Notes under the pieces: model-generated
What the model was told of the DNA's origin: nothing
Seen by the model: the letters and a program-made list of their open reading frames with translations, nothing else
The model's database searches: none
Shown here: positions 38,101 through 64,000 of the stretch, piece by piece
Layout: each line of letters opens with the position of its first letter
Position numbering within the stretch: the first letter of the stretch is position 1
Origin: Bugula neritina
Lineage: Eukaryota; Animalia; Bryozoa
NCBI GenBank assembly: GCA_964035545.1
Contig: OZ037770.1
Span: 12,700,642-12,764,641 of the forward strand
DNA length: 64,000 nt
Reading direction: 5' to 3'
Translations under genes and position numbers: made by a program

Positions 38101-40000
38101 AATTCAATTTGATTCTAATGTGTTTAAAAGAGCATTTAATGTTAGTGTATTCAGTATTTTTATGATATAGTGTATAGATAAAAAACTATTAACCTATTCA
38201 CTCTCCTCTCCACCCTACCCGTCCATGTATCTGTTTAAATAATTTTGTGATATCCTTCCAAACAAATAGTGTTAAAGCTGTTCCATTTACTGCTCTCAAG
38301 TCATGGACTGTTACCTTGACATCATTCTCTAGTAAACAACATTTAAATTCTAGATTCTACTGCATAGCCATCTGTTTGGTTTCCATAACTGATGAACCTT
38401 TGTATTATATTCAAATACAAAATAACACTATAGCGTCACCTAAACCAGTTTACTATCAGCAAAATTTGATAAACTATATAAACATTACACACCCCTTTCC
38501 TAGGCTGTTGGTTGCTCTAGTTTTAGCAGTAAAATAACAAATTTCTATGCATAAAACTAAACACATAATTTGTGAAAAATATTGATATAAATTTAAATTT
38601 CTTTTTGCTCCAATAATTAAATTTATTGGATATAATTCTTACTTCAATTTTATTGAATTTATTAAGGTTCTACAGTGGAGCAGCAGTTTGTTTTCTGATT
38701 GATATATTGATTCACACTCTTTCAAGCCCTGAGTTAATTGTTATAAAGTGTTTAGATGTGCAGCTGTAATATCTACATAAACCGATACTAAATATATAGG
38801 CTTAAGTTAACAGCTCATAGATAATACACAAGATGGAGCCACTTTTGATGACTGTGAGGGTCTATAATTATTTCTAAAATAATTCTGTTAAATTCATTTT
38901 TAGCTTGAAATATGATGCTGCTATGACAATAGTTAAGATTCCTACTCAAATACTAAATACTGTAAACAATGGACGATTTATTTTAATCTGTCAAATAGTT
39001 GTGTAAACATTATATAATTGGCTTTGACTTTTTTATGTCTAATTACGAGATACTAAACAGATGCAAAGTATGTTGTGCATAGGCAGTTTTTTATGCTGCT
39101 AAACAACATTCTAGGAAAATATATACTGAAACATTATGAGACTCACTATAATCTATATCCTTATTAGGAGTTTGAATATATCAAATTAGATCTGCTGTGT
39201 AAAAACCTCGCTATTTTATTATTAATCTACACTGTCTCTGCTTTATACTTCATTTATTTACTTTTTGAAGCTAAGAGCTCCATGTTATCTGGAGCTTTTT
39301 ACTTCCAAAATGTTATGCACGTAATACTAGGGCATATCAACTCCCCCAGCCCCTAATTCTCCTCACTGCTAGAATTAAGGCTACTGTTCTGATAAGATTT
39401 TGGTAACATAAGAAGGGGAGGACCTCATTCACACACTGCTAGCCTTGCTAGTGCATGAGAAGATAAACTGTAGCTGTAAACTTATACCATAAGATAGAGT
39501 AGAGAAATAATATGACGAGAAACAATTTGACTCACTGTAGAATGTAGATTCAAGGTGAGTTGACAGTTATAATGAATAGAAGTTTATAAATGCTACAATC
39601 ACAATTTGATGAAATTTGGTGATGTTTTGTAGTCTATGTTTGTGATATAGTTAACTGTGACATTTCTAAAATAGGGTAGTACTTAAAAATATCAATGCAG
39701 ACATACTCAACGCCTGATCTGTTCATGTTTGCATGGTTTGGGGGTTTTTACTTTGTGTTAATAACTCCATAGTCAACAACCATTTATAGCAGTTTAGAGC
39801 AGTAGCTAAGCTAAAGCACCATCTTAATTTAACCTGGAGCACTGTGAACATGTATGAGGGAGAATCATTTTCATTTATTCGTTGTTTCAGATATAAAAGT
39901 TGCACTGTGATGAGATATAACAGACTGTGTTATACTAAAGTATAATGGAGAACTCATCCATTGTGATATACAGACTATTATAACGCAGAGACTCAACAAC

Positions 40001-43000
40001 ATGGCTGGGAGAGAAGGTTTTAAACTATTTATACTAATTAATATATTAGATTTATTCTAAGAAAACCTCCAAAGAGAACGGGCAGTTTTAAAACTGGCTT
40101 CAGTTTCTGTCAAAGCTTTTAAGTTTAACTTATTAAAAGTTAATGTTGTTACTGTTATTTATATAACTGATTTTCTTAGCCTAATTGTTCAAGTTTTATC
40201 TTTAAACTATTTTGTATTAGTCTGCTATTGCTATACTATAGCTTGTATTAAAATCATCTGGAAGATATCGGTTGCTGGGTTACTGTTCACTAGTGTATGG
40301 GTTATATGCACCGAGTAACAAATATTAGTAAATCAGATCATTCTTTACGATCAGTCGCTTATTATTGCTAAATCTATAAAAAATTTATAGCTTTTTTTGT
40401 TTTTTTAATAGATTACAGTATAATATAGCCATCAGGTAGAGTTCACCTTGTATATATAGAACATGCAATAATGTATTAAATAAAATACAGTAGAACCTGT
40501 GTTCTACAAACTATTTGAATATTGCTCTCTGCAGTGTACTCTAGTAAACTAGAAATAATAATTAACGATATTTGGTTTTAGCTCAGTTGTTTAATGCTGA
40601 ATATTTACAAAGTTTTTATCGCTGTTATTTGTATGTCTTTCTGATAGATTCCAGTATAATGTAACAGTTTGGTAAAGTTCATATTATGTGTGAAACATGT
40701 AGTGTGTTACAAAGTAGAACTTCTTTTCTGAGAACCTTTTTATTTTAGTAGACAGGAAATAATATTTCTTTATATATTATGCTGTAGATGTGTACAGACT
40801 GTGGATTGGACATAGTGGTATAGATATTCCTGAGTACTGGCTACGTGAAAGCGAAACAAAATACACTACTCAAAGTATAAAAAAGATTTCTCAGACCCAC
40901 ACTGTAACACATCTTGTTATATATGAAAAAATTCCATCACAGATCCATCTTATTTTCCCACACCTCACTCATCTCAGAATTTATGGAGTTCAACCATGTG
41001 ACCTTCAAAAGTGAGTGCATAATTCATTAGGTTATACAATTTTTCAAGTGTACTGAAATTTATGTTGGCAAAATGTAATGGCAGCGCCATTTTGTTTGTG
41101 CTGTTACTCTTGCTAATAAAGTTGTTTGTTACAGCATCAGCAAGTTGACTAATCTGAAGGTATTAGACATGGATCACAGTGACTTTTCTGCTGGTCTACC
41201 TGACATCTTCAGTTCTTTACTCTCTCTGGAAAAACTGACGTTGAACTACTGTAGCTTACGAACTCTTCCCAAGAGGTGAGCACACTTTACATTCTCTGCT
41301 ATGCTACTTATTGCACTTCCTTTCATATATCAACAAACCTAATCTCATTTCACACAACAGTTCAGCATGTCCTGTTTAGCACCTGATTTAGGCTTTTATA
41401 TAGTTTGTGAGTAGTATAGGTGTGTGTTTAATATTTCTTGTTGGTTTGCATGTAATATTCAATGTTAAATTGTTTAAAAATATTGTAATAATATAAATTT
41501 CAATGTTATTTAGCTTGTGCTAATCTAATACTCTTGCTAATAAAGTTGATTGTTACAGCATCAGCAAGTTGACTAATCTGAAGGTATTAGACATGAGTAA
41601 CAATAACTTTTCTGCTGGTCTACCTGACATCTTCAGTTCTCTACTCTCTCTGGAAGAACTGATATTGGGCTACTGTAGCTTACGAACTCTTCCCAAGAGG
41701 TGAGCACACTTTACATTCTCTGCTATGCTACTTATTGTACTTCCTTTCATATATCAGCAAACCTAATCTCATTTCACACAACAGTTCAGTATGTCCTGTT
41801 CAGCACCTGATTTAGGCTTTTATATAGTTTGTGAGTAGTATAGGTGTGTGTTTAATATTTCTTGTTGGTTTGCATGTAATACTCAATGTTATTGTTTAAA
41901 AATATTGTAATAATATAAATTTCAATGTTATTTAGCTTGTGCTAATCTAATACTCTTGCTAATAAAGTTGATTGTTACAGCATCAGCAAGTTGACTAATC
42001 TGAAGGTATTAGACATGAGTAACAATAACTTTTCTGCTGGTCTACCTGACATCTTCAGTTCTCTACTCTCTCTGGAAGAACTGATATTGGGCTACTGTAG
42101 GTTAAAGACTCTCCCCAAGAGGTGAGCACACTTTACATTCTCTGCTATGTTACTTAGCCTAGGGCCACACTGTGCGTATTTTCGCATGCGAAAATTGAAA
42201 TCACAAGTAGCAAAGGTGTCCACTGTGCGCGTTGAGAAAACATTCGCACTTGTCGCTCTGCATTTTCAACGCAAGTGCGAATCGTCTCTGTCGTCGTCAC
42301 CTAATTGGCTGGTAGTTATTCAGCGAGCCCAATTTCTTCATTTTAGTGCTACATTCCAGTAAATTGTGTTTTATTGAAAGCGAGTGCGATTTAAAAATGA
42401 AAGCTTTATTTATCACGCATCACTGACGCTACAGTGGACACCTTTGCTACTTGTGGTTTCAATTTTCGCATGCGAAAATACGCACAGTGTGGCCCTAGGC
42501 TTATTGTACTTCCTTTCATATATCAGCAAACCTAATCTCATTTCACACAACAGTTCAGTATGTCCTGTTCAGCACCTGATTTAGGCTTTAATATAGTTTG
42601 TGAGTAGTATAAGTGTGTGTTTAATATTTCTTGTTGGTTTGCATGTAATACTCAATGTTATTGTTTAAAAATATTGTAATAATATAAATTTCAATGTTAT
42701 TTAGCTTGTGCCAATCTAATACTCTTGCTAATAAAGTTGATTTTTACAGCATCAGCAAGTTGACTAATCTGAAGGTATTAGACATGGGTCACAATGACTT
42801 TTCTGCTGGTCTACCTGACATCTTCAGTTCTCTCCCCTCTCTGGAAAAATTAGAGTTGTGTGGGTGTAAATTAAAAGCTCTCCCCACAAGGTACAGCTTT
42901 ATCATAATATTCCATGCTACATTTCATATTTTTTCCTAAATCTTAGTTTCCTTATGATGTATAGCAATTTACTTTGATTTTGATTTTGAAAATACCTATA

Positions 43001-46000
43001 GATAATAGATATTATAACATACATAATGACTTTTTTTATATAATTTATTTATAAAGTTTAATTATAGCTAGTAGCTGATATTAAATTGGTCATCTTTCAC
43101 AGTGGATATGATTTATATCCCCCTGTTCACACATTACCGTTCCGTATGCCGTAATAGTAAATGTCCGCCATCTTTGGTAACATCCGGGCTGATCAAGCAG
43201 TGCTTGATTCAAAAATCACGGCTGGCTCCTATTGGGTAAAGTTGATCTGGTGCTAAAATTTTAAGAACATTTTTGCTAGTTTATTTTAATTGCTTATTGT
43301 TGATTCAATTCAGCCAATTCAAAAGTTTTATAGGATTAAAAAATCTTTATCCAGTATGTTTAAATTAAATTCAGCTTAAAAATCTAATCACAAAAGTACG
43401 CAAACTAAAAACTTAAAAATTATTTGGACAGCTAAAATATTTATTCAAATTAGTTTGCCTATTTATTTTAAGGACACATATATTTAAAAAAGAAATCAGT
43501 TCTTTTTAATTGCTTTTATTTAGTCAATAGCGTTTATATACATCTTTTGAAAATAATGGTGCGAATAATTTGTGAATAATATCCTGTCACAAATTCTGAG
43601 TGTACATATACCTATAGACTTACCGGGTTATTCCCAATGATTATACACGAATGTTCATAAATATTCTAGACTGATCGAAGAGATGGGTCATTGTTCATTG
43701 TTATTGTTTTCATTAGTCATGTTAACTACTGCCCAGCAATGTAAACAAGGTGTTGCGCAATAATTGCGAAATAACCATGGAAATTCCAATGTTTTGTTTT
43801 GTTTTGATTTTCTATAAATAGTATTGGCATGTGGGGAATGTTTTCTACTAGAATCTTCTATACTGGAATGCTTGAGAATGTTCTAGAGTTTTTTTGTTTA
43901 CTATAAATACTGAGGCAGTTGTGTTTACGAATCAGTTCATTCTCGGAGTTCATTTTTATAAATTCATCTGTGCATATCTTACTAGAAAAATAAAGTCTAC
44001 TTATATTCACAACTCTATTTACTCTCAACTGGATTAGCAAGCTGTATGCTACTTTTTTATACACTTCTGACTACCAGACTTTTCGAACTCGTCATACTGC
44101 TACCAACAGTTTTGTGACAATTGGGGCTGCTCCGGGAAGTCTCAGTCGCATACAGGGAAGTTATTAGTTACAACGTGAGCATACACAGGATTAATTAACA
44201 GTTGTTGAGACATCATGGCGTTGTTGGAGAGAGTGACACAGATGGGTAAAGATCTTGGACTGGTGGATGACAAGCTCGTAGCTTTTGTTGAAAAGAAACT
44301 ACCCATTGTTGCTGCACAAGAAGAAAAAGAAAAGGACCGAGAGGAAAAAGAAAAGGACCGAGAGGAGCGGAGATTAGAGCGTGAGGCGGAAAGGATCAGG
44401 CAAGAAAATGAGAAAGCCATAATGGAGATGAAGATAAAAGCTGACCAGGAGGCAGAAGAGAGAAGACAACAACATGAATTAGATATGGAAAAGCTGAAAG
44501 CTAACACAAGTTTGGAGCACTCAAGACATGAAAGCACCAGGTTAGAAATAGCTGACAAACCAAAACCAAAAATACCATTCTTTGATGAGAAGGTGGACGA
44601 AATGGATAGCTATTTAGAGCGGTTCGAGTGGGTTGCCGAAGGATGTAACTGGGACAAGGGAGATTGGCCCTACCATCTCAGTCAGTACCTAAGGGGTACA
44701 GCAACAGAAGCTTACATCCGGTTGTCACCTACGGATCGTAGAGATTATAAAAAAGTCAAAGAAGCCTTGTTGGAGCGCTTTAACTTGACTCAAGAGGGCT
44801 ACAGAAAAAAGCTCAGGGAGGCAGAAGCTTACGAGGATGAAACTCCTGCCCAACTATTCACTAGGATAGAAAGTTATGTGCACAAGTGGGTGGAGCTTTC
44901 AGGGGGCATGGACATAGCCAAACTAGTGGCGACTGAACAATTTATATCACCATGCCCAGACGACCTAGCTGTGCATTTAAAGCAAAGTTCCTACAACAGC
45001 AGTGAGGATATGTGTGATGCAGTGTCACTGTTCTTGCACGCCCGTGGAAGGAAACTAGCAAAGACAAAGAAAACTAATACAAAAAGGATGGAAAACACAC
45101 TTGCCGATAGCATGCATGCTGAACAAGGAAGTAAAAGCGATGGTGCATGCTTCATCTGCAAAGATAAATCACACATTGCTCGTAACTGCCCACGGCGAGG
45201 GAAGAAGTACTGTTCACATTGCATGATGAACAATCACAATACTTCAGACTGCAGAAAGTATGGTGGAAGGTCAGTGCATGCTGCTGCTGCAATAGCGACT
45301 ACTCAGAATAAGACTATGGTCACAGATCCAGGAATGTCATCTAAAGTGGAAGAACCTACTGAAATCACAGTTACCGGTAAAAAGTTTGTCAACGCTGCTG
45401 TCTGCAAGAATGGACCTAAATTCAAAGATGGGGGCACAGCAATATTTGATGCGGAAGTTAATGGCCAACGAGCTACTGTAATGCGCGACACCGGCTGTGG
45501 TTGCAATGTAGTCAATGCAAAGTATGTGCAACCTCAACACTTAACTGGAGAATCAGTTTATTTGAATATGGCTGATGCAAGTGTTAGGGAGGCTCAGTGG
45601 GCACTTATCTCAGTGCGCTCACTATTTTACAATGGTGTTGTCAAAGCTGCAGTAATGGACAAGACGATTTGTGACCTGTTTATTGGGAATGTAGATGGAG
45701 CAAGATCAGCTGACCAGCCGTTGGAAAACTGGAAGGACTGCGCCGTAACCACAAGAGCTCAAGCTGTCAAGGAAAAGTCAGGAGACAAACCACTGATAGT
45801 TGATTCAAATGCTAACCCATTAAGTATAGGGAAAGATGAGATAGCCAGACTGCAGAGGGATGACCCCACATTGGAACGTTTCTTCAATGCAAAAGAAGTG
45901 AAGAAGAAAAAGGGATGCACCACTAGGTTTGTGGTGAGGAATAAGATTCTGTACCGTGAGTACACCGACTCGAAGTCTGCCAGTGTAAAACCTGTTAAAC

Positions 46001-49000
46001 AACTCATGGTACCCAGTTCTCTGAGGAAGGAGGTTCTACAGAAAGCTCATGACTGCATAATGAGCAGACACCTAGGAGTAAAGAAAACCACTGATAGAGT
46101 GCTTTCCAACTTCTTCTGGCCAGGACTAAACGGAGATGTCGTACGTTTCTGTCAATCATGTGACATTTGCCAGAAGACGGTGAAAAAAGGCTCAGTCATG
46201 AAAGTTCCAGTACAGGAAACACCACTAATTGACACCCCATTCAAGAGATGTGCAATAGACCTAGTCGGACCAATTAACCCTCCAAGTGAGAAAGGACACC
46301 GCTACATCCTAACTTTAGTTGACTATGCTACAAGATATCCTGAAGCTACACCATTGAAGAACATTGACTCAGCTACTGTAGCTGAAGCGCTGCTTGACAT
46401 GTACAGTCGTGTTGAGATACCAGAGGAGGTGATAAGCGACCAAGGAACTCAATTCATCTCAGACTACATGAAAGAGTTTACCAGATTACTTGACATGCGA
46501 CAACTTCCTACTTCACCGTACCATGCAATGGCCAATGGACTTGTGGAAAAGTTCAACGGAACCCTCAAGAGTATGTTAAAAAAAGTTGTGTGCTAAAGAG
46601 CCAAGACAGTGGCATCGGTTCATCAATGCGGCTCTATTTGCATATAGAAAAGTCCCACAGGAATCAACAGGCTTCGCCCCATTCGAGTTACTCTATGGAA
46701 GAACTGTGCGTGGACCAATGTACATCCTGCGACAACTTTGGACAAAAGAAGACACTGCCGATGAAGTCAAGACCTGCTATCAGCATGTTTTTGAGTTGAG
46801 AGAGCGTTTGGATGACATGATGGAGATGGCACTAGCCTCGCTAAAAGACAGTCAAAAAAGATACAAACACTATTTTGACCAGAAAGCTAAGCAGAGAGAC
46901 TTCAAACCTGGTGACAAAGTGCTCATTCTTCTACCTACGGATGGAAATAAATTGTTGATGCATTGGCAAGGACCATTCAATATTGAGGAGAAAGTCAGAC
47001 TGAATGACTACATTATCAACATTAGAGGCAAGAGGAGAACATACCATGCCAACATGCTGAAGAAATATTTTGAGCGGGAGACGCCCACCAACCTTATGAC
47101 TGTTGGAGCTGTGATGACTTTAGATGCTGCTGGTACTGGAATTATTGATCACGATGAGGAAAGAGAAGAACGCTAAAATGATTTGTTCGACCTGTACGGT
47201 AAGAAACAGCAGACAGAAACAAGCAAAGATGTCTTTCTGGGTGAAAAGCTGGGGAATCAGCAAAGAAGACAGCTGGAGGAGTTACTAAGAAAGTTTGAAG
47301 GTATCTTCAGTGACTTGCCAGGAAATGCAACGGGAATAGAACATTCTATCAAGCTCACGACTGATGAGCCAGTGAAATCCAAACCATATGGATTGCCCTA
47401 CAGGGTAAGAGAGACTCTCAAGGCGGACATCGAGGACATGTTGAAGATGGGTGTTATTCGGCCGTCTACCTCTCTCTACGCTTCACCAACGGTGATAGTA
47501 AAGAAGCCAGATGGAGGCAACAGGATTTGTATAGACTATCGCAAACTAAACCGAGTCTCAGTATTCGATCCTGAACCAATGGTGAAAACAGATGACGTTT
47601 TCAGAAAGCTCAGTAAAGATAAATACTTTACCAAACTTGATTTATCCAAGGGATACTTGCAAATACCAGTGAAGAAAGAAGATATTCCTAAAACTGCATT
47701 TGTGACACCCGATGGACATTATGAATTCATCAAGATGCCATTTGGGATGGTTAACTCTGGAGCGACACTGGTGAGAGGGTTGAGAAAACTTTTTGTAAAT
47801 CTGAAAGGAGTGGACAACTACATTGATGACATTCTAGTGCACACGGAAAGTTGGGAAGAACACGTTAAAACGCTAACAGAAGTTTTCAGCCGACTTGCCA
47901 CAGCTGGACTTACCATTAAACCAAGTAAATGTAGAGTAGGAGGAACAAACGTGGAGTTCATCGGACATAAACTTTACAGGGGTGGAATTAAACCAATGGA
48001 TGACAACATTGAGAAAATTAGGGCTGCGCCAAGGCCAACCAATAAGACGCAAGTGAGATCGTTCATTGGACTTACTAGTTACTACAGAGAATATATCCCT
48101 CATTATTCAACTATAGCGAGTCCACTAACAGATTTAACAAAGAAGGGAGAACCAAAGAAAGTCAAATGGCAGGAACCACAAGAGAAGGCGTACACCAGCT
48201 TAAAAACAATGCTGACAAGTGCACCAATTTTAAAATTACCAGATGTACACAAACCGTTTGTGCTAAGGACGGATGCATCAGATGTTGGGCTAGGGGCAGT
48301 GCTGATGCAGCCTCAGGATGGAAAGCTGTTCCCTGTGAGTTACGCAAGTAGGAAATTACTAGACCGAGAAAAAAACTACTCAGCCATAGAGAAGGAATGT
48401 TTAGCTGTGGTATGGGCGGTCAAGAAATATCTACAATATTTATATGGTGTGGAGTTCGTGCTGCAGACTGATCACCAACCGCTGGTTTACATCAATTAGG
48501 CCAAATTTGAGAACAGCATAGTGATGAGATGGGCTATGTATTTACAGAACTTCAGAATCAAGGTGGAGTCAATCAAAGGAAAGGGCAATGTTGGAGCCGA
48601 TTATCTAAGCCGAATTGACTCAGAATTTTAAGTAGTAAGGAGAAATTATTAAGATAATTTCTCTTAGAATGGGGGGTTGTCACAAATTCCGAGTGTACAT
48701 ATACCTATAGACTTACCGGGTTATTCCCAATGATTATACACGAATGTTCATAAATATTCTAGACTGATCGAAGAGATGGGTCATTGTTCATTGTTATTGT
48801 TTTCATTAGTCATGTTAACTACTGCCCAGCAATGTAAACAAGGTGTTGCGCAATAATTGCGAAATAACCATGGAAATTCCAATGTTTTGTTTTGTTTTGA
48901 TTTTCTATAAATAGTATTGGCATGTGGGGAATGTTTTCTACTAGAATCTTCTATACTGGAATGCTTGAGAATGTTCTAGAGTTTTTTTTGTTTACTATAA

Positions 49001-52000
49001 ATACTGAGGCAGTTGTGTTTACGAATCAGTTCATTCTCGGTGTTCATTTTTATAAATTCATCTGTGCATATCTTACTAGAAAAATAAAGTCTACTTATAT
49101 TCACAACTCTATTTACTCTCAACTGGATTAGCAAGCTGTATGCTACTTGTCTATACACTTCTGACTACCAGACTTTTCGAACTCGTCACACTGCTACCAA
49201 CAGTTTTGTGACATATCCTAAAGCTTACAATTCACGACAGACAAGAATGACCCTTATTATGATTGGTTGAAGCTCAACATCATTCGTTGTAGTTTACGCC
49301 AGTGTGTGAACGCCTGTTGACAAAATGTAACGGCAGCGCCATTTTGTTTGTGCTGTTACTCTTGCTAATAAAGTTGATTGTTACAGCATCAGCAAGTTGA
49401 CTAATCTGAAGGTATTAGACATGGGTCACAATGACTTTTCTGCTGGTGTACCTGACATCTTCAGTTCTCTACTCTCCCTGGAAGAACTGATATTGGGCTA
49501 CTGTAGCTTACGAACTCTTCCCCTGACCCATTAATTTGATTGTTACAGCATCAGCACGTTGACTAATCTGAAGGTATTAGACATGGGTCACAATGACTTT
49601 TCTGCTGGTCTACCTGACATCTTCAGTTCTCTCCCCTCTCTGGAAAAATTAGAGTTGTGTGGGTGTAAATTAAAAGCTCTCCCCACAAGGTACAGCTTTA
49701 TCATAATATTCTATGCTACATTTCATATTTTTTCCTAAATCTTAGTTTCCTTATGATGTATAGCAATTTACTTTGATTTTGATTTTAAAAATACCCATAG
49801 ATAATAGATATCATAACATACATAATGACTTTTTTATATCAATTATTTATAAAGTTTAATTATAGCTAGTAGCTGATATTAAATTGATCATCTTTCACAG
49901 TGGATATGATTTATATCCCCTTGTTCACACATTGTCATCCCGTATGCCGTAATAGCAAATGTCCGCCATCTTTGGTAACATCCGGGCTGATCAAGCAGTG
50001 CTTGATTCAAAAAATCACAGCTGGCTCCCATTGGGTATATAGAGTTGATTTGGTACTAAAATTTTAAGAACATTTTTGCTAGTTTATTTTAATTGCTTAT
50101 TGTTGATTCAATTTAACCAATTCAAAAGTTTTATAGGATTAAAGATCTTTATCCAGTATGTTTAAATTAAATTCAGCTTAAAAATATAATCACAAAAGTA
50201 CGCAAACCAAAAACTTAAAAATTATTTGGACAGCTAAAATATTTATTCAAATCAGTTTGCCTAATTATTTTAAGGACACATAGGCTATATTTGAAAAAGA
50301 GATCGTTTCTTTTTAATTGCTTTTATTTAGTCAATAGCGTTTATATACATCTTTTGAAAATAATGTTGCGAATAGTTTGTGAATAATATCCTAAGGCGTA
50401 CAATTCACCGCAGACAAGAATTAGCCTAATTATGATTGGCCGAAGCTCAACAACATCATGTGTTGTACTTTACGCCAGTGTGTGAACGCCTGTTGACAAA
50501 ATGTAACGGCAGCGCCATTTTGTTTGTGCTGTTACTCTTGCTAATAAAGTTGATTGTTACAGCATCAGCACGTTGACTAATCTGAAGGTATTAGACATGA
50601 GTAAAATTAACTTTTCTGCTGGTCTACCTGACATCTTCAGTTCTCTACTCTCTCTGGAAAAACTGACGTTGAACTGCTGTAGGTTAAAGACTCTCCCCAA
50701 GAGGTGAGCACACTTTACATTCTCTGCTATGCTACTTATTGTTCTTCCTTTCATATATCAGCAAACCTAATCTCATTTCACACAACAGTTCAGCATGTCC
50801 TGTTTAGCACCTGATTTAGGCTGTTATATAGTGTGTGAGTAGTATAGGTGTGTGTTTAATATTTCTTGTTGGTTTGCATGTAATATTAAATGTTATTGTT
50901 TAAAAATATTGTAATAATATAAATTTCAATGTTATTTAGCTTGTGCTAATCTAATACTCTTGCTAATAAAGTTGATTGTTACAGCATCAGCAAGTTGACT
51001 AATCTGAAGGTATTAGACATGAGTAACAATAACTTTTCTGCTGGTCTACCTGACATCTTCAGTTCTCTACTCTTTCTGGAAGAACTGATATTGGGCTACT
51101 GTAGGTTACAGACTCTCCCCAAGAGGTGAGCACACTTTACATTATCTGCTATGCTACTTATTGCACTTCCTTTCATATATCACCAAACCTAATCTCATTT
51201 CACACAACAGTTCAGCATGTCCTGTTTAGCACCTGATTTAGGCTTTTATATAGTGTGTGAGTAATATAGGTGTGTGTTTAATATTTCTTGTTGGTTTGCA
51301 TGTAATATTCAATGTTATTGTTTAAAAATATTGTAATAATACAAATTTCAATGTTATTTAGCTTGTGCTTATCTAATACTCTTGTTAATAAAATTGTTTG
51401 TTACAGCATCAGCACGTTGACTAATCTGAAGATATTGGACATGAGTGAAAATAACTTTTCTGCTGGTCTACCTGACATCTTCAGTTCTCTACTCTCTCTG
51501 GAAGAACTGACGTTGAACTACTGTAGCTTACGAACTCTTCCCAAGAGGTGAGCACACTTTACATTCTCTGCTATGCTACTTATTGTACTTCCTTTCATAT
51601 ATCAGCAAACCTAATCTCATTTCACACAACAGTTCAGTATGTCCTGTTCAGCACCTGATTTAGGCTTTAATATAGTTTGTGAGTAGTATAAGTGTGTGTT
51701 TAATATTTCTTGTTGGTTTGCATGTAATATTCAATGTTATTGTTTAAAAATATTGTAATAATATAAATTTCAATGTTATTTAGCTTGTGCTAATCTAATA
51801 CTCTTGCTAATAAAGTTGATTGTTACAGCATCAGCAAGTTGACTAATCTGAAGGTATTAGACATGGGTCACAATGACTTTTCTGCTGGTCTACCTGACAT
51901 CTTCAGTTCTTTCCCCTCTCTGGAAAAATTAGACTTGTGTAGGTGTAAATTAAAAGCTCTCCCCACAAGGTACAGCTTTATCATAATATTCTATGCTACA

Positions 52001-55000
52001 TTTCATATTTTTTCCTAAATCTTAGTTTCCTTATGATGTATAGCAATTTACTTTGATTTTGATTTTGAAAATACCTATAGATAATAAATATTATAACATA
52101 CATAATGAGTTTTTTATATCAATTATTTATAAAGTTTAATTATAGCTAGTAGCTGATATTAAATTGATCATCTTTCACAGTGGATATGATTCATATCCCC
52201 CTGTTCACACATTGTCTTCCCGTATGCCGTAATAGCAAATGTCCGCCATCTTTGGTAACATCCGGGCTGATCAAGCAGTACTTGATTCGAAAAATCACAG
52301 CTGGCTCCCATTGGGTAGAGTTGATCTGGTACTAAAATTTTAAGAACATTTTTGCTAGTTTATTTTAATTGCTTATTGTTGATTCAATTTAACCGATTCA
52401 AAAGTTTTATAGGATTAAAGATCTTTATCCAGTATGTTTAAATTAAATTTAGCTTAAAAATATAATCACAAAAGTACGCAAACCAAAAACTTAAAAATTA
52501 TTTGGACAGCTAAAATATTTATTCAAATTAGTTTGCCTAATTATTTTAAGGACACATAGGCTATATTTGAAAAAGAGATCGTTTCTTTTTAATTGCTTTT
52601 ATTTAGTCAATAGCGTTTATATACATCTTTTGAAAATAATGTTGCGAATAGTTTGTGAATATTATCCTAAGGCGTACAATTCACCGCAGACAAGAATTAG
52701 CCTAATTATGATTGGTCGAAGCTCAACAACATCATGTGTTGTACTTTACGCCAGTGTGTGAACGCCTGTTGACAAAATGTGACGGCAGCGCCATTTTGTT
52801 TGTGCTGTTACTCTTGCTAATAAAGTTGATTGTTACAGCATCAGCACGTTGACTAATCTGAAGATATTGAACATGAGTGGAAATAACTTTTCTGCTGGTC
52901 TACCTGACATCTTCAGTTCTTTACTCTCTCTGGAAGAATTGCATTTGAGAAGTTGTAGCTTACGGACTCTCCCCAAGAGGTGAAATACTTTTTATATTTT
53001 GCGCTATGCTACTTATTGCACTTCGTTTCATATATCACCAAACCTAATCTCATTTCACACAACAGTTCAGTATGTCCTTTTTAGCACCTGATTTAGGCTT
53101 TTATATAGTTTGTGAGTAGTATAAGTGTGTGTTTAATATTTCTTGTTGGTTTGCATGTAATATTCAATGTTAAATTGTTTAAAAATATTGTAATAATATA
53201 AATTTCAATGTTTTTTAGCTTGTGCTAATCTAATACTCTTGCTAATAAAATTGTTTGTTACAGCATCAGCAAGTTGACTAATCTGAAGATATTGAACATG
53301 AGTGAAAATAACTTTTCTGCTGGTCTACCTGACATCTTCAGTTCTCTACTCTTTCTGGAAGAACTGATGTTGAACTACTGTAGGTTAAAGACTCTCCCCA
53401 AGAGGTGAGCACACTTTACATTCTCTGCTATGCTACTTATTGTACTTCCTTTCATATATCAGCAAACCTAATCTCATTTCACACAACAGTTCAGCATATG
53501 TCCTGTTTAGCACCTGATTTAGGCTTTTATATAGTTTGTGAGTAGTATAAGTGTGTGTTTAATATTTCTTGTTGGTTTGCATGTAATATTCAATGTTATT
53601 GTTTAAAAATATTGTAATAATATAAATTTCAATGTTATTTAGCTTGTGCTAATCTAATACTCTTGCTAATAAAGTTGATTGTTACAGCATCAGCACGTTG
53701 ACTAATCTGAAGATATTGAACATGAGTGAAAATAACTTTTCTGCTGGTCTACCTGACATCTTCAGTTCTCTACTCTTTCTGGAAGAACTGATATTGGGCT
53801 ACTGTAGGTTACAGACTCTCCCCAAGAGGTGAGCACACTTTACATTCTCTGCTATGCTGCTTATTGTACTTCCTTTCATATATCAGCAAACCTAATCTCA
53901 TTTCACACAACAGTTCAGTATGTCCTGTTCAGCACCTGATTTAGGCTTTTATATAGTTTGTGAGTAGTATAAGTGTGTGTTTAATATTTCTTGTTGGTTT
54001 GCATGTAATATTCAATGTTGTTGTTTAAAAATATTGTAATAATATAAATTTCAATGTTATTTAGCTTGTGCTAATCTAATACTCTTGCTAATAAAGTTGA
54101 TTTTTACAGCATCAGCACGTTGACTAATCTGAAGGTATTAGACATGAGTAAAAATAACTTTTCTGCTGGTCTACCTGACATCTTCAGTTCTCTACTCTCT
54201 CTGGAAAAACTGATATTGGGCTACTGTAGGTTACAGACTCTCCCCAAGAGGTGAGCACACTTTACATTCTCTGCTATGCTACTTATTGTACTTCCTTTCA
54301 TATATCAGCAAACCTAATCTCATTTCACACAACAGTTCAGTATGTCCTTTTTAGCACCTGATTTAGGCTTTTATATAGTTTGTGAGTAGTATAGGTGTGT
54401 GTTTAATATTTCTTGTTGGTTTGCATGTAATATTCAATGTTATTGTTTAAAAATATTGTAATAATATAAATTTCAATGTTATTTAGCTTGTGCTAATCTA
54501 ATACTCTTGCTAATAAAATTGTTTGTTACAGCATTTGTAATTTGACTAATCTGAAGGTATTAGACTTGAGGCACAATGACTTTTCTGCTGGTCTACCTGA
54601 CATCTTCAGTTCTTTACTCTCTCTGGAAAAATTAGAGTTGTGTTGGTGTAAATTAAAAGCTGTCCCCACAAGTTACAGCTTTATCATAATATTCTATGCT
54701 ACATTTCATATTTTTTCCTAAATCTTAGTTTCTTTATGATGTATAGCAATTTACTTTGATTTTGAACTTAAAAATACCTATAGATAATAGATATTATAAC
54801 ATACATAATGACTTTTTTATATCAATTATTTATAAAGTTTAATTATAGCTAGTAGCTGATATTAAATTGATCATCTTTCACAGTGGATATGATTTATATC
54901 CCCCTGTTCACACATTGTCTTCCCGTATGCCGTAATAGCAAATGTCCGCCATCTTTGGTAACATCCGGGCTGATCAAGCAGTGCTTGATTCAAAAAATCA

Positions 55001-58000
55001 CAGCTGGCTCCCATTGGGTAGAGTTGATCTGGTACTAAAATTTTAAGAATATTTTTGCTAGTTTATTTTAATTGCTTATTGTGCATTCAATTTAACTAAT
55101 TCAAAAGTTTTATGGGATTAAAAATTTTTTATCCAGTATGTTTAAATTAAATTCAGCTTAAAAATCTAATCACAAAAGTACGCAAACCAAAAACTTAAAA
55201 ATTTCTTGGACAACTAAAATACTTATTCAAATTAGTTTGCCTAATTATTTTAAGAACACATATATTTAAAAAAGAGATCAGTTCTTTTTAATTGCTTTTA
55301 TTTAGTCAATAGCATTTATATACATCTTTTGAAAATAATGTTGCGAATAATTTGTAAATAATATCCTAAGGCAGACAGACAAGAATTAGCCTTATTATGA
55401 TTGGTCAAAGTTCAACATCATGTGTTGTACTTTACGCCAGTGTGTGAATGCCTGTTGGCAAAATGTAACGGCAGCGCCATTTTGTTTGTGCTGTTACTCT
55501 TGCTAATAAAGTTGATTGTTACAGCATCAGCACGTTGACTAATCTGAAGGTATTAGACATGAGTAAAATTAACTTTTCTGCTGGTCTACCTGACATCTTC
55601 AGTTCTCTACTCTCTCTGGAAAAACTGACGTTGAACTGCTGTAGGTTAAAGACTCTCCCCAAGAGGTGAGCACACTTTACATTCTCTGCTATGCTACTTA
55701 TTGTTCTTCCTTTCATATATCAGCAAACCTAATCTCATTTCACACAACAGTTCAGCATGTCCTGTTTAGCACCTGATTTAGGCTGTTATATAGTGTGTGA
55801 GTAGTATAGGTGTGTGTTTAATATTTCTTGTTGGTTTGCATGTAATATTAAATGTTATTGTTTAAAAATATTGTAATAATATAAATTTCAATGTTATTTA
55901 GCTTGTGCTAATCTAATACTCTTGCTAATAAAGTTGATTGTTACAGCATCAGCAAGTTGACTAATCTGAAGGTATTAGACATGAGTAACAATAACTTTTC
56001 TGCTGGTCTACCTGACATCTTCAGTTCTCTACTCTTTCTGGAAGAACTGATATTGGGCTACTGTAGGTTACAGACTCTCCCCAAGAGGTGAGCACACTTT
56101 ACATTATCTGCTATGCTACTTATTGCACTTCCTTTCATATATCACCAAACCTAATCTCATTTCACACAACAGTTCAGCATGTCCTGTTTAGCACCTGATT
56201 TAGGCTTTTATATAGTGTGTGAGTAATATAGGTGTGTGTTTAATATTTCTTGTTGGTTTGCATGTAATATTCAATGTTATTGTTTAAAAATATTGTAATA
56301 ATACAAATTTCAATGTTATTTAGCTTGTGCTTATCTAATACTCTTGTTAATAAAATTGTTTGTTACAGCATCAGCACGTTGACTAATCTGAAGATATTGG
56401 ACATGAGTGAAAATAACTTTTCTGCTGGTCTACCTGACATCTTCAGTTCTCTACTCTCTCTGGAAGAACTGACGTTGAACTACTGTAGCTTACGAACTCT
56501 TCCCAAGAGGTGAGCACACTTTACATTCTCTGCTATGCTACTTATTGTACTTCCTTTCATATATCAGCAAACCTAATCTCATTTCACACAACAGTTCAGT
56601 ATGTCCTGTTCAGCACCTGATTTAGGCTTTAATATAGTTTGTGAGTAGTATAAGTGTGTGTTTAATATTTCTTGTTGGTTTGCATGTAATATTCAATGTT
56701 ATTGTTTAAAAATATTGTAATAATATAAATTTCAATGTTATTTAGCTTGTGCTAATCTAATACTCTTGCTAATAAAGTTGATTGTTACAGCATCAGCAAG
56801 TTGACTAATCTGAAGGTATTAGACATGGGTCACAATGACTTTTCTGCTGGTCTACCTGACATCTTCAGTTCTTTCCCCTCTCTGGAAAAATTAGACTTGT
56901 GTAGGTGTAAATTAAAAGCTCTCCCCACAAGGTACAGCTTTATCATAATATTCTATGCTACATTTCATATTTTTTCCTAAATCTTAGTTTCCTTATGATG
57001 TATAGCAATTTACTTTGATTTTGATTTTGAAAATACCTATAGATAATAAATATTATAACATACATAATGAGTTTTTTATATCAATTATTTATAAAGTTTA
57101 ATTATAGCTAGTAGCTGATATTAAATTGATCATCTTTCACAGTGGATATGATTCATATCCCCCTGTTCACACATTGTCTTCCCGTATGCCGTAATAGCAA
57201 ATGTCCGCCATCTTTGGTAACATCCGGGCTGATCAAGCAGTACTTGATTCGAAAAATCACAGCTGGCTCCCATTGGGTAGAGTTGATCTGGTACTAAAAT
57301 TTTAAGAACATTTTTGCTAGTTTATTTTAATTGCTTATTGTTGATTCAATTTAACCGATTCAAAAGTTTTATAGGATTAAAGATCTTTATCCAGTATGTT
57401 TAAATTAAATTTAGCTTAAAAATATAATCACAAAAGTACGCAAACCAAAAACTTAAAAATTATTTGGACAGCTAAAATATTTATTCAAATTAGTTTGCCT
57501 AATTATTTTAAGGACACATAGGCTATATTTGAAAAAGAGATCGTTTCTTTTTAATTGCTTTTATTTAGTCAATAGCGTTTATATACATCTTTTGAAAATA
57601 ATGTTGCGAATAGTTTGTGAATATTATCCTAAGGCGTACAATTCACCGCAGACAAGAATTAGCCTAATTATGATTGGTCGAAGCTCAACAACATCATGTG
57701 TTGTACTTTACGCCAGTGTGTGAACGCCTGTTGACAAAATGTGACGGCAGCGCCATTTTGTTTGTGCTGTTACTCTTGCTAATAAAGTTGATTGTTACAG
57801 CATCAGCACGTTGACTAATCTGAAGATATTGAACATGAGTGGAAATAACTTTTCTGCTGGTCTACCTGACATCTTCAGTTCTTTACTCTCTCTGGAAGAA
57901 TTGCATTTGAGAAGTTGTAGCTTACGGACTCTCCCCAAGAGGTGAAATACTTTTTATATTTTGCGCTATGCTACTTATTGCACTTCGTTTCATATATCAC

Positions 58001-60956
58001 CAAACCTAATCTCATTTCACACAACAGTTCAGTATGTCCTTTTTAGCACCTGATTTAGGCTTTTATATAGTTTGTGAGTAGTATAAGTGTGTGTTTAATA
58101 TTTCTTGTTGGTTTGCATGTAATATTCAATGTTAAATTGTTTAAAAATATTGTAATAATATAAATTTCAATGTTTTTTAGCTTGTGCTAATCTAATACTC
58201 TTGCTAATAAAATTGTTTGTTACAGCATCAGCAAGTTGACTAATCTGAAGATATTGAACATGAGTGAAAATAACTTTTCTGCTGGTCTACCTGACATCTT
58301 CAGTTCTCTACTCTTTCTGGAAGAACTGATGTTGAACTACTGTAGGTTAAAGACTCTCCCCAAGAGGTGAGCACACTTTACATTCTCTGCTATGCTACTT
58401 ATTGTACTTCCTTTCATATATCAGCAAACCTAATCTCATTTCACACAACAGTTCAGCATATGTCCTGTTTAGCACCTGATTTAGGCTTTTATATAGTTTG
58501 TGAGTAGTATAAGTGTGTGTTTAATATTTCTTGTTGGTTTGCATGTAATATTCAATGTTATTGTTTAAAAATATTGTAATAATATAAATTTCAATGTTAT
58601 TTAGCTTGTGCTAATCTAATACTCTTGCTAATAAAGTTGATTGTTACAGCATCAGCACGTTGACTAATCTGAAGATATTGAACATGAGTGAAAATAACTT
58701 TTCTGCTGGTCTACCTGACATCTTCAGTTCTCTACTCTTTCTGGAAGAACTGATATTGGGCTACTGTAGGTTACAGACTCTCCCCAAGAGGTGAGCACAC
58801 TTTACATTCTCTGCTATGCTACTTATTGTACTTCCTTTCATATATCAGCAAACCTAATCTCATTTCACACAACAGTTCAGTATGTCCTGTTCAGCACCTG
58901 ATTTAGGCTTTTATATAGTTTGTGAGTAGTATAAGTGTGTGTTTAATATTTCTTGTTGGTTTGCATGTAATATTCAATGTTGTTGTTTAAAAATATTGTA
59001 ATAATATAAATTTCAATGTTATTTAGCTTGTGCTAATCTAATACTCTTGCTAATAAAGTTGATTTTTACAGCATCAGCACGTTGACTAATCTGAAGGTAT
59101 TAGACATGAGTAAAAATAACTTTTCTGCTGGTCTACCTGACATCTTCAGTTCTCTACTCTCTCTGGAAAAACTGATATTGGGCTACTGTAGGTTACAGAC
59201 TCTCCCCAAGAGGTGAGCACACTTTACATTCTCTGCTATGCTACTTATTGTACTTCCTTTCATATATCAGCAAACCTAATCTCATTTCACACAACAGTTC
59301 AGTATGTCCTTTTTAGCACCTGATTTAGGCTTTTATATAGTTTGTGAGTAGTATAGGTGTGTGTTTAATATTTCTTGTTGGTTTGCATGTAATATTCAAT
59401 GTTATTGTTTAAAAATATTGTAATAATATAAATTTCAATGTTATTTAGCTTGTGCTAATCTAATACTCTTGCTAATAAAATTGTTTGTTACAGCATTTGT
59501 AATTTGACTAATCTGAAGGTATTAGACTTGAGGCACAATGACTTTTCTGCTGGTCTACCTGACATCTTCAGTTCTTTACTCTCTCTGGAAAAATTAGAGT
59601 TGTGTTGGTGTAAATTAAAAGCTGTCCCCACAAGTTACAGCTTTATCATAATATTCTATGCTACATTTCATATTTTTTCCTAAATCTTAGTTTCTTTATG
59701 ATGTATAGCAATTTACTTTGATTTTGAACTTAAAAATACCTATAGATAATAGATATTATAACATACATAATGACTTTTTTATATCAATTATTTATAAAGT
59801 TTAATTATAGCTAGTAGCTGATATTAAATTGATCATCTTTCACAGTGGATATGATTTATATCCCCCTGTTCACACATTGTCTTCCCGTATGCCGTAATAG
59901 CAAATGTCCGCCATCTTTGGTAACATCCGGGCTGATCAAGCAGTGCTTGATTCAAAAAATCACAGCTGGCTCCCATTGGGTAGAGTTGATCTGGTACTAA
60001 AATTTTAAGAATATTTTTGCTAGTTTATTTTAATTGCTTATTGTGCATTCAATTTAACTAATTCAAAAGTTTTATGGGATTAAAAATTTTTTATCCAGTA
60101 TGTTTAAATTAAATTCAGCTTAAAAATCTAATCACAAAAGTACGCAAACCAAAAACTTAAAAATTTCTTGGACAACTAAAATACTTATTCAAATTAGTTT
60201 GCCTAATTATTTTAAGAACACATATATTTAAAAAAGAGATCAGTTCTTTTTAATTGCTTTTATTTAGTCAATAGCATTTATATACATCTTTTGAAAATAA
60301 TGTTGCGAATAATTTGTAAATAATATCCTAAGGCAGACAGACAAGAATTAGCCTTATTATGATTGGTCAAAGTTCAACATCATGTGTTGTACTTTACGCC
60401 AGTGTGTGAATGCCTGTTGGCAAAATGTAACGGCAGCGCCATTTTGTTTGTGCTGTTACTCTTGCTAATAAAGTTGATTGTTACAGCATCAGCAAGTTGA
60501 CTAATCTGAAGGTATTAGACATGGGTCACAATGACTTTTCTGCTGGTGTACCTGACATCTTCAGTTCTGTACTTTCTCTGGAAGAACTGATATTGGGCTA
60601 CTGTAGCTTACGAACTCTTCCCAAGAGGTGAGCACACTTTACATTCTCTGCTATGCTACTTATTGTACTTCCTTTCATATATCAACAAACCTAATCTCAT
60701 TTCACACAACATTTCAGTATGTCCTGTTTATAAACGTAATATAAGCGTTAATGTTTCTGTTGATCGTTTCTTTATGCTAATCTAATGCCCTGACCCATTA
60801 ATTTGATTGTTACAGCATCAGCAAGTTGACTAATCTGAAGGTATTGGACATGGGTGGAAATCACTTTTCTGCTGGTCTACCTGACATCTTCAGTTCTCTC
60901 CCCTCTCTGGAAGAATTGAATTTGAGAAGTTGTAGTTTACGGACTCTCCCCAAGAG
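40001..60956 (+). CDS. Leucine-rich-repeat protein gene, 5' part, with a tandem array of 26 two-LRR cassette exons; probably intracellular (ROCO/MFHAS1-like or NLR-like); 3' exons not found in window
   Basis: Putative start exon 40001-40016 (CAACATGG context, MAGRE, phase 1, weak donor) and cap exon 40788-41010 (ends phase 2, GTGAGT donor). The 141-nt phase 2-2 exons start at 41135, 41559, 41981, 42750, 49387*, 49549, 50563, 50985, 51407, 51829, 52839, 53264, 53688, 54110, 54532*, 55525, 55947, 56369, 56791, 57801, 58226, 58650, 59072, 59494*, 60487 and 60816 (* = dead donor). Consensus is SISKLTNLKVLDMSxNxFSAGLPDIFSSLLSLEELxLxxCxLxTLPK. No signal peptide is seen. Confidence 0.85.
42157..42500. 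mobile_element. PIF/Harbinger-like MITE inserted in an LRR-array intron
   Basis: About 70-bp TIRs beginning GCCTAGGGCCACACTGTGCGTATTTTCGCATGCGAAAATTGAAA, with a TTA TSD (42154-42156 and 42501-42503). Sister introns show the empty site CTACTTATTG. Confidence 0.9.
43585..49213 (+). mobile_element. Full-length Ty3/Gypsy LTR retrotransposon, Gmr1-like domain order (gag-PR-IN-RT-RH), inactivated
   Basis: LTRs at 43585-44119 and 48678-49213 (TGTCAC...GTGACA; I count about 5 substitutions and 1 indel). 5-bp TSD TATCC, tRNA-Pro-like PBS (TGGGGCTGCTCCGGGA) just after 44119 and PPT AGAATGGGGGG before 48678. Confidence 0.95.
44215..48631 (+). pseudogene. Gypsy gag-pol polyprotein, disrupted
   Basis: CCHC knuckles (CFICKDKSHIARNC, CSHCMMNNHNTSDC), protease (MRDTGC), integrase (H..H..C..C zinc finger, AIDLVGP, SDQGTQF, NGLVEKFNGTLK, GPF), RT (CIDYRKLN, YIDDILV) and RNase H (LRTDASDVGLGAVL, TDHQPL). 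There is a frameshift in an A-run near 46580-46590 and in-frame stops at 47174-47176 and 48497-48499. The natural stop ends at 48631. Confidence 0.92.
50500..60490. repeat. Near-perfect 4,962-bp tandem duplication of nine LRR cassettes
   Basis: Identical ORFs are offset by 4,962 (50557/55519, 51312/56274, 52567/57529). I noticed only one difference by eye (53859 G versus 58821 A). Confidence 0.93.
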
Positions 60957-61415
60957 GTAAAACACAAAACACTTTTTATATTTTGCACTGTGCCACTTAT
61001 TGTACTTCCTTTTACCTATCAGCAAAGCTAATCCTATTTCAAACAACAGTTCAGTATGTTCTGTTTAGGCTTTTAGTGTGTGAGTAGTATAGGTGGGTGT
61101 TTAGTATTTACAGTATTGGTTTACATGTATATTTATACACAATCCTAATTCGTAGTCTTTGCAGTTTCTGTAATATGTTGTCATTTGCTTAGTTTTTCAA
61201 ATGTGTAAGTGCAGCCCGAAACTCAGTCATAGTCTTGTATATACTTGGATGCTTGTATGTGTACAACAACAAATTGTTTAATTACTAAAACAGAAAACCT
61301 GTAATGACTATTGGTTTAGCATATAATGTGACCTCACAGGTAAAATTGGTAAATCACACAGTACTATGTCTGTGGCATTAGGCAATACGGTTGTATAATG
61401 GACCCTTTTTTCTCT

Positions 61416-62930
61416 AGAGGCATTTATAATTTGAAGTTGTCTCCTTCCACCATGATGGAAAAAGTGTCATTAAATAGTAGAAATTTGAGGTTTGTGTGAA
61501 GACTGTTGCTAGTATGAGTTTCACTTTTTCTGTGAAAAGTATTTTGGTATAAGCACACATATTAGAAGTTTCAGAAGTTTTTCGAAAAATCTTTTTCTTG
61601 ATGATTTTGAAAATAATTAACTTCAAAGAATTTTTGGGGTCTTGATTATGCTGAAGCTGGCAGCTGTCATATAAATCCCACTAATCTTTTGTTTTGCTGG
61701 CTGTCACCATTATGTTTAGAGCTGTTAACCTTTTAACTCTTAGAATGCTCATTGTATACAACGCAGCCCTGGTTATTGCGTAGCTACAATAGTCAGCTCT
61801 GTCTTACTAAAATCTAATAGATCCAAGTTATGGGTTAGAACATGTGCCTGTAGATTATGAAGGCACTAGCCCATCTGTGTTAGCATGTTTACATACTTAC
61901 AAACCAATACTATGAAAATAACTATAAGGCTGCCCTACTATATAATATTTTTACTAAAAATATTATCACAAATATTATACGGATTTGTATTAAAATAAAT
62001 AGAGTAAATTTATGCTAATGAATGTAACACAAAGAGCTGAATGCTAACAGCTGGAAATAAATAGAAAAGTTTTCTGGGTTTTTTATTAAATTATCTAAAT
62101 GTGTTTATTATTTGAGCACAATTGTTACAATTGCAATAAATATGTAGCCTGTTCGCAAACTATTTGCTACCGTATTCCTAAATTTATGTGCTTCTTTTTA
62201 CGGGTCTCTAAATAATTTCATTGACTTGTAGGAATTCCATGTAAAGAAATGCTTTTAAAGCATATATACCTATTGTGTTTGGCATTTTTAGATTGGAATA
62301 TATTGTTTGATATTACAAATTTAATATATTTCTTTTAATATATATCTTCATAATATTTTTAGTAAAAATATTATATAGTAGGGCAGCCTTATATTTTTTT
62401 TCATAGTATTGGTTTGTAAGTATGTGAACATGCTAACACAGATGAGCTAGTGCCTTCATAATCTACAGGCATGTGTTCCAACCCATAACTTGGATCTATT
62501 AGATTTTAGTAAGACAGAGCTGACTATTGTAGCTACACGCAATAACCAGGGCTGCGTTGTACACTATGGGTATGTTAGTATTCTAAGAGTTGAAAGGTTA
62601 ACAGCTCTAACTAGAGTGGACAGCCAGCAATACAAAAGATTAGTGGGATTTATATGTCAGCTGCCAGCTTCAGCATTGCTCCATAACCACAACTACAAAA
62701 ATGGTTTAAATTTTTTTTTAAGTTATCAAGAAAAAGACTTTTTTAGATTTCTGAAACTGCTAATATGAGTGCTTGTGCCAAAATACTTTTCACAGAAAAA
62801 ATGAAACTCATGCTAGCAATAGTCTTCACACAAACCTCAAATTTTACTGATTTTATGTCAATTCTCTCCATCATGGAGACTCTTCCTTGTGCCTTGTGAG
62901 AGGAGACAACTTAAAATTATAAATGCCCCT
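61416..62930. mobile_element. Foldback-type / long-TIR non-autonomous element (arms ~61416-61966 and ~62350-62930)
   Basis: About 550-bp diverged inverted arms (for example GGCTGCCCTACTATATAATATTTTTACTAAAAATATTAT and its reverse complement; ACGCAGCCCTGGTTATTGCGT versus ACGCAATAACCAGGGCTGCGT) around a ~380-bp AT-rich spacer. No clear TSD. Confidence 0.75.
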
Positions 62931-64000
62931 GAAAGGATATGTGAAAAAAGTCTATTGCTTTTAGTGAATTGCTGTGAGTCTCCTTGTAGAATAATATTTA
63001 GTGGCAATAATTTAGGATCAATACGAGATCATTGGTTGACCAAATGACGTAGGTGTAGTAATGGAGAAAGTGGGAAAAGCTAGTGTTCTAGATTAATAGC
63101 TAATAGTATTCCTACCATTGTCAAATAACTTTATTCTAAATTCCTGTAGACATAATTACACAATTAGATTCCAACAGGCTGCATGTTTTAGTATATATAA
63201 AAAGAAGACATTTAAAAGGTGGTTTTTCCACTCTAATTCATATACATGTGTAAAATAATTTTATCTGTTGTGCCTTTGAGGGCCACATAAATGTAGGCTG
63301 GAGGCTACATCCGGCCCTGGCACCAACTGTTGGAAAGCCCTAGTCTGATCTAATGTTTTTGCATATCAAATTTTGTCTTGTATACACTATGCTTCCATTA
63401 ATTATTACATGATGCGAATGGATTTTTTCATTCGCCCTATTATGAAAATAGTTGCATCGAAGCAAAACCGCAGCCGGAAATTTAATCAAATAGCTCCTTC
63501 CAGTTATAGTTACAATTCAATGGCTCCTTTGATGAAAAATTTCTTACGCATTTTTTGATTGATATAGTAACTGGTCCTTTCATTAAATCAAATGAAACCT
63601 TTTGTGGCGGAGGCAGTGACCAGCGATTGTGTCTGCTAGTTACACAGATATTCGATGTAAACAATAATTACATACATGTTACATGCTAAAGTGCATTTCG
63701 TCTCATAACAACTTAAGTTATTTAATTGATTTTAGCTGCTATTATTTAAGATAGTTACCAACCATCTTAAATTTATAAAACTTTTCTACAAACCAAAGCA
63801 TTCCCAAGCTAAAAATAAATTGACAGCTATTTTCATTTTGAAAACATAAATTACTCTTAAGCTTTAGGCTACCAGTGGTTACACAATACTTTATTCCTTT
63901 ATTGGTTTGTGCTTTTTAATTTAAAACAAATTAATTCACATGCAGTGTGTGTATTTAATAAATTTAATCTAGCGAAAATGGGGGCAGAAGAGGTAAATGA

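Follow-up and report, generated by a model that had tools for sequence, protein, structure and literature searches.

The window analysed here is a 64,000-nucleotide stretch of contig OZ037770.1 (assembly GCA_964035545.1, positions 12,700,642 to 12,764,641 of the forward strand) from an animal that we take to be a cheilostome bryozoan of the Bugula neritina complex. Its plus strand carries an array of 26 tandem exons of 141 nt (41135-60956), here called cassettes, situated 3' of a 223-nt exon that codes for an N-terminal cap (40788-41010). Every cassette has an AG acceptor, is in phase 2 at both ends and specifies 47 stop-free codons that form two leucine-rich repeats (LRRs). BLAST comparison places all 26 copies beyond chance (E values from 5e-67 to 1e-32), and the count of 17 distinct cassettes plus nine exact copies made in a first-pass annotation of this DNA was reproduced when the array was re-derived from the sequence. 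The symmetry of these phase-2 exons means that units can be added to the array, removed from it or left out in splicing with the reading frame preserved. Intact GT-AG boundaries are seen in 23 of the 26 cassettes, and the acceptors are near-identical throughout. The earlier annotation recorded a single donor-less cassette, at 49387, but there are actually three: cassette 5 (49387..49527, +) has had its donor deleted, which joins it directly to the cassette 6 acceptor, while in cassette 15 (54532..54672, +) and in cassette 24, which is its copy (59494-59634, +), the donor GT is replaced by TT. Read-through leads to a stop in each of the three, and hence a full-length mRNA must skip all of them.

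The exact copies stem from a 4,962-bp tandem duplication (50497..60494, +), by which cassettes 7-15 recur as cassettes 16-24 with one mismatch in ~5 kb. In the DNA-like run X1, a contig bearing the seven letters that mark cassettes 15 and 24, the T of the dead donor included, has a depth of 198 as against 99-105 in unique sequence. This twofold depth makes it unlikely that the duplication is an artefact of assembly, and we rejected that explanation; as X1 may be the sample behind the assembly, the depth is a test of the assembly and not of the population. The copy count rests on the cassette 15/24 contig, the other collapsed contigs being unusable for counting.

The cap exon has an acceptor, in phase 1, and is not the first coding exon; it is preceded by a short exon (39891..40016, +) with an ATG at 40001, 16 coding nucleotides (40001-40016) and a phase-1 donor, whose reading frame fits that of the cap. 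The ATG and the GT of this start exon are conserved in a homologue from another Bugula sample (L021, 88% identity), and contigs of the RNA-like runs X7 and X9 lie on it, with the next intron empty. The cap exon itself (phase 1 in, phase 2 out) encodes a family-specific region of 73 aa that has no match in Pfam and whose relatives elsewhere are short exon-sized gene calls only; one candidate relative, P0041, was dismissed as a chance match. At the other end of the array, the intron that leaves the window (60957..64000, +) leads to the remaining exons, which lie in locus L011. An exon of 2,072 nt (L011:1266-3337), which encodes the final LRRs together with a Roc GTPase and a COR domain, starts in frame 625 bases beyond the window end. 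It is followed by two linker exons (L011:3711-3794 and 4083-4273), placed by frame and a GT-AG check, and five caspase exons (L011:4638-4808, 5161-5383, 6192-6368, 7279-7388 and 7724-7861), which supply a His in an SHG motif and a Cys in EVCSG. All introns are GT-AG, and one ORF remains open from the ATG exon through the cap, the cassettes, the Roc-COR exon, the linkers and a full caspase to the stop at L011:7861. With every one of the 23 intact cassettes included, the predicted protein would have 2,215 aa; a signal peptide is absent from the gene model. Exon phases were checked across this model; the database searches and the fold prediction were run on separate exons. The first-pass annotation had anticipated a cytosolic ROCO/MFHAS1- or NLR-like sensor with its effector exons further downstream, and named Roc-COR, NACHT and death domains as what might be found there; Roc-COR and then a caspase are indeed what follows.

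The Roc domain is recognised by PF08477 (29.9 bits, cut-off 27) and has the motifs GNTMAGKT and DMGG, while the COR-A/B models of Pfam match the region after it weakly (E values 0.005 and 0.03). An AlphaFold model of the Roc-COR exon (pLDDT 85.5) has LRRK1, the C. tepidum Roco and LRRK2 as its top Foldseek matches, with structural alignments to the Roc-COR regions of LRRK1, LRRK2 and C. tepidum over 570-720 columns; the structure of an isolated COR (3dpt) is also matched, with an E value of 3e-8. By its modelled fold the protein is a ROCO, with Roc followed by COR, for which a cycle of GTP binding and hydrolysis is predicted. PF00656 (Peptidase_C14) scores above cut-off on two of the caspase exons, the best PDB matches are CED-3 and caspase-2, and the His and Cys align with those of CED-3. 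The catalytic pentapeptide is EVCSG, not QACxG; it is QACSG in Watersipora and QACRG in amphioxus. Inspected by eye, the S1 pocket appears to have both arginines (in RKGS and AVRH), with Gln replaced by Glu. We conclude that the gene carries a caspase-family p20/p10 domain with a His-Cys dyad, and that its product is a putative protease. The architecture is distinct from that of the NLRs, which have a STAND ATPase and C-terminal LRRs, in that a Roc GTPase forms the switch and the LRRs are N-terminal; an NLR-type gene with an upstream NACHT was considered and rejected, as only the short ATG exon and unrelated genes lie upstream.

Two insertions interrupt the introns of the array. A MITE-like palindromic element with terminal inverted repeats (~42153..42503) occupies the intron after cassette 3, and its contig depth is very high in all four runs. 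The intron after cassette 4 holds an LTR retrotransposon of the Ty3/gypsy type (43585..49213, +; ~5.6 kb), which has LTRs of 535/536 bp that are ~1% apart (5 mismatches and 1 gap), a 5-bp target-site duplication, and Pfam matches to rve, Integrase_H2C2, RVT_1 and RT_RNaseH. This element is young and its reading frame is interrupted; its integrase is upstream of the RT-RNase H, an order that we take to be Gmr1-like. A long near-perfect palindrome is also found in a caspase intron (L011 ~6494-6684); the Rfam models that it resembles are all miRNA hairpins, each scoring under its cut-off, and a hammerhead is not among them. Elsewhere in the window there are three similar intronless ORFs of ~460 aa (4664-6052, -; 13774-15162, +; 17425-18798, -), two of them with a weak match to a sulfotransferase (PF13469) below cut-off, and the first two held within an inverted duplication (3612-6176 versus 13650-16230, 94%). 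An ORF of 388 aa (11260-12426, -) has a DUF1759 domain (PF03564), which is typical of BEL/Pao retrotransposon gag. Exon-like open frames of a spliced gene (~25400-35300, -) lie upstream of the Roco-caspase gene and divergent from it, and a metagenome scan with a neighbouring exon, made for synteny, found no relative. Directly downstream of the Roco-caspase gene, ~10-18 kb past the window end (L012, +), there are exons that by eye resemble selenium-binding protein 1/methanethiol oxidase.

The cassettes differ from each other in a patterned way. Of the 44 residues that vary among the 16 distinct full cassettes, 28 occupy one of the 12 positions that are exposed on the LxxLxLxxN strands (p=5e-5), and the residues of the LRR core are invariant while those of the face vary. 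The pN/pS ratio is 1.3 on the LRR face versus 0.35 elsewhere, and the closely related A-type cassettes give 0.199/0.036; as they are taken from related, recombining copies, these values are descriptive and not a formal test of selection. An excess of nonsynonymous change, one of the signs that the first-pass annotation had named, is supported for the LRR face. Four-gamete incompatibility increases with the distance between sites, being 0.31 for near and 0.57 for far ones (p=0.002), and the cassettes join 10 different first halves to 13 different second halves in 15 combinations. Together these results indicate that half-exons have been exchanged across the invariant core. Judged from their sequences, the cassettes are recombinant mosaics made in the germline.

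The closest homologue comes from another Bugula sample (L023), and its best match in the present genome is this locus. Between the two, DNA identity is 65% in the LRR part of the large exon, as against 88-91% in its Roc-COR part and 83-91% in the introns, and protein identity is 44% in the LRR part as against 88% in Roc-COR. The low share of words found in other runs could have pointed to an allele that is hypervariable between colonies; we discarded this idea, since other loci of the same JGI samples also show a background identity of 82-92% and only the LRR part stands out. As pS is raised in the LRR part too, exchange with a paralogue may contribute to its divergence. The JGI samples with Bugula host DNA (L021-L023, L027 and L029) have ~87% identity to the present genome at orthologous loci, much as expected for a cryptic sister type. 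In L021 (1901-3102) no cassette was found within 1.2 kb after the cap exon, and in the present gene only 124 bp separate the cap exon from cassette 1; the layout of the array hence differs between the two.

The gene belongs to a large family. A search with the Roc-COR exon gave 112 candidates in the genome, from which 82 paralogues were scored, setting the family size at 82 genes or more. When the two lists of exon matches were paired by eye, all 82 Roc-COR exons proved to have a caspase exon downstream on their own strand, at a distance of up to 16 kb, and of no more than 7 kb in 78 cases. For the cap exon, the genome contains 61 paralogous matches. The search for paralogous cassette arrays that the first-pass annotation had suggested was also productive, with 782 candidate cassette exons; the three nearest paralogues, on C4, have 6, 6 and 5 cassettes as counted from positions only, and the 26 seen here are hence a recent expansion in this gene. 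The exon-by-exon search found a single partial match to NACHT in the genome, a count that is a lower bound. Three matches to gasdermin N-terminal exons lie above the Pfam cut-off (G000:C2:2048552, 4286293 and 4312189), and these are candidate caspase substrates. Among named proteins, those of Bugula neritina come nearest (79% identity), and B. neritina, Watersipora and Branchiostoma, which were annotated independently, all have gene models in which the parts are fused.

We consider it probable that the array encodes the N-terminal sensor arm of a single LRR-Roc-COR-caspase protein, a germline-diversified, single-chain cytosolic sensor-switch-protease. The arm has grown recently in the germline, from the 5-6 cassettes of the nearest paralogues to 26, by tandem exon duplication, unequal crossing-over and half-exon exchange across the invariant core, with amino-acid change accumulating on the concave β-strand face. 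Its mRNA would mostly carry the long run of 23 intact cassettes (up to ~50 LRRs), perhaps with some skipping. Members of the Roco family form dimers by way of COR, in a cycle linked to the nucleotide, and dimerisation is also what activates initiator caspases. We propose that in the cytosol a ligand bound to the LRR face would shift the nucleotide state of Roc and bring about COR-mediated dimerisation, so that two C-terminal caspase domains would meet and be activated by induced proximity, with no adaptor involved. The active caspase would then cleave death or defence substrates such as effector caspases or gasdermin-like proteins, and the family could thereby fill the role of the NLR-inflammasomes of other animals. 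Against this stand the absence of an end-to-end transcript of this allele among the contig data, a catalytic motif of EVCSG rather than QACxG in a caspase whose activity is predicted, and the three broken cassettes, the LTR insertion and a frameshifted homologue, which would fit an unstable or decaying gene.

How the cassettes are spliced bears on a first alternative, in which alternatively spliced transcripts would each include a different selection from the 23 intact cassettes, so that one gene would provide many LRR surfaces. Contigs of the RNA-like runs cover the ATG exon, the cassettes and, in a single run, the cap exon, and two RNA-like contigs (records 17 and 25) begin at a cassette acceptor after other sequence; a similar exon-biased pattern is seen in a DNA run of a diverged sample. 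The pattern of contigs fits cassette-to-cassette splicing, with the identity of the cassettes unspecified. Combinatorial use is favoured by these two contigs, the symmetry and near-identical acceptors of the cassettes, the obligatory skipping of the three dead ones, and the multiple splice variants of the brown-algal ROCOs, which have LRR exons of 72 nt in phase 2 (PMC11378527). However, the symmetry is explained equally well by tandem duplication. In the assembled contigs, for which the single alignment is swamped by the MITE, no splice joint specific to the locus was listed, and no joint that skips a cassette was recovered in that alignment. Neither a docking-site nor a mutually exclusive exon arrangement is apparent in the array, and the Watersipora RefSeq model uses seven of its seven LRR exons, in series, the sampled isoforms differing outside them. 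We therefore regard combinatorial splicing as rather unlikely. A broader version, in which ~100 single-chain LRR-Roc-COR-caspase receptors replace the NLR-inflammasomes of bryozoans and combinatorial splicing gives each cell or zooid its own repertoire, for the recognition of pathogens, symbionts or colony self and non-self, is in our judgement decidedly unlikely.

The sensor-arm reading has also to be weighed against decay, by which the 26 cassettes would reflect mutational slippage of an unstable array in a recent copy that makes little or no working protein. The three dead cassettes, the LTR and MITE insertions, the very young 5-kb duplication and the non-canonical EVCSG are all compatible with this, as is a 20-nt frameshifting deletion in the COR region of the closest homologue, from the other sample. 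Yet the 23 intact cassettes and the downstream exons are free of stops and frameshifts, the LRR core is invariant against a variable face, and pN/pS in Roc and COR is ~0.2-0.28 relative to that same homologue, which makes decay very unlikely. Somatic rearrangement, in which deletion or gene conversion in each cell or zooid would yield an anticipatory repertoire like that of the VLRs, could draw on highly similar tandem units with invariant cores as good recombination substrates, and the mosaic cassettes show that exchange happens, but it is extremely improbable, given that the germline already contains the whole gene, where a VLR locus has first to be assembled, that an RSS search of the array found heptamer-like 7-mers and no nonamers, and that germline events explain all the variation seen. 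The earlier proposal of a repertoire generated by splicing or by germline or somatic recombination is hence supported in its germline part, by the mosaic cassettes and the four-gamete test; as to splicing and somatic change, no joint specific to the locus was recovered in the contigs and the array has no RSS nonamers.

We did not find bryozoan LRR-Roc-COR-caspase genes described in the literature covered, which left most subscription journals outside its scope, nor, within the same scope, a paper on the combination and expansion of these parts in an animal; the B. neritina genome paper mentions neither caspases nor LRRs. The parts themselves are already known, from amphioxus LRRs-caspase genes, bacterial Roc-COR-caspase proteins and algal exon shuffling. 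The immune and allorecognition receptors of bryozoans are essentially unknown, and the family of sensor-switch-protease genes offers a concrete and testable candidate, given the diversification of the LRR face and a genome almost without NACHT receptors by the lower-bound count. Caspase activation would also provide a direct read-out for Roco GTPases, at a time when the switching mechanism of LRRK2 is debated.

Among known systems, the lamprey VLRs and arthropod Dscam1 have, like the bryozoan array, many similar modules in one locus. The bryozoan gene differs from them in lacking a signal peptide or membrane anchor, in being complete in the germline, with cassettes that are intron-flanked exons inside the gene, and in showing no sign of somatic assembly or of mutually exclusive exon clusters; the Watersipora model with all its LRR exons in series argues against exon choice of the Dscam type. 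The comparisons with VLRs and Dscam made in the first-pass annotation are hence reduced to analogy, while its mention of the brown-algal ROCOs points to a closer precedent. Human MFHAS1, LRRK1 and LRRK2 share the LRR-Roc-COR fold; the bryozoan protein differs in having a caspase and no kinase, and in belonging to a massively expanded and diversified family.

Bacterial proteins with LRRs, an AP-GTPase (Roc), COR and an effector have been predicted to act against invaders (Kaur et al. 2021, PMC8195603). They share with the bryozoan protein fast-evolving N-terminal LRRs, a Roc-COR switch and a C-terminal effector, with caspase among at least 24 listed effectors (PMC8195603), but are prokaryotic, intron-less and variable in the effector; the bryozoan family has one constant effector, most similar to the animal caspases CED-3 and caspase-2. 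In amphioxus, 'LRRs-caspase' hybrid genes have been noted as a possible direct link of recognition to apoptosis (Zhang et al. 2008, PMC2575513); in the passages covered here, that paper does not name Roc-COR. Branchiostoma proteins annotated as MFHAS1-like have Pfam LRR, Roc, COR and caspase domains, and HHalign matches their LRR-Roc-COR half to its bryozoan counterpart over the full length (probability 100, E 2e-51, 584 columns, 21% identity); the hybrid genes of the 2008 paper may be those that encode these proteins. The caspase motif is QACRG in amphioxus and EVCSG in the bryozoan. Closer at hand, Watersipora subatra has at least 10 RefSeq proteins with Roc-COR-like and caspase parts, named 'MFHAS1 homolog', and one of its genes follows the same exon plan, with two-LRR exons of 45-51 codons, Roc-COR on a single large exon, a pair of linker exons and a caspase divided over five exons. 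A protein of Penaeus japonicus (P0078, 803 aa) weakly matches the Watersipora query (E 3e-15, 26% coverage) and has a caspase as its only Pfam domain.

A close parallel in gene structure is seen in the brown-algal ROCOs, for which exon-shuffled LRRs and selection on the concave face have been described (Teng et al. 2024, PMC11378527, citing Zambounis et al. 2012). In both, the domain order is LRR-Roc-COR, the LRR exons are symmetric and in phase 2, exons have been duplicated within the gene, the concave face is where variation lies, the family is large and a role in immunity is proposed (PMC11378527). The algal exons are of 72 nt with one LRR, as opposed to 141 nt with two, and the algal protein ends after COR, where the bryozoan one goes on to a caspase. 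Alternative splicing is documented in the algae, whereas the bryozoan array is known from genome and contigs, and the algae have 9-47 such genes against at least 82 in the bryozoan. These cassette-exon ROCOs are probably of independent origin, and brown algae and bryozoans would then be convergent in building the LRRs of their ROCO genes from phase-2 cassette exons.
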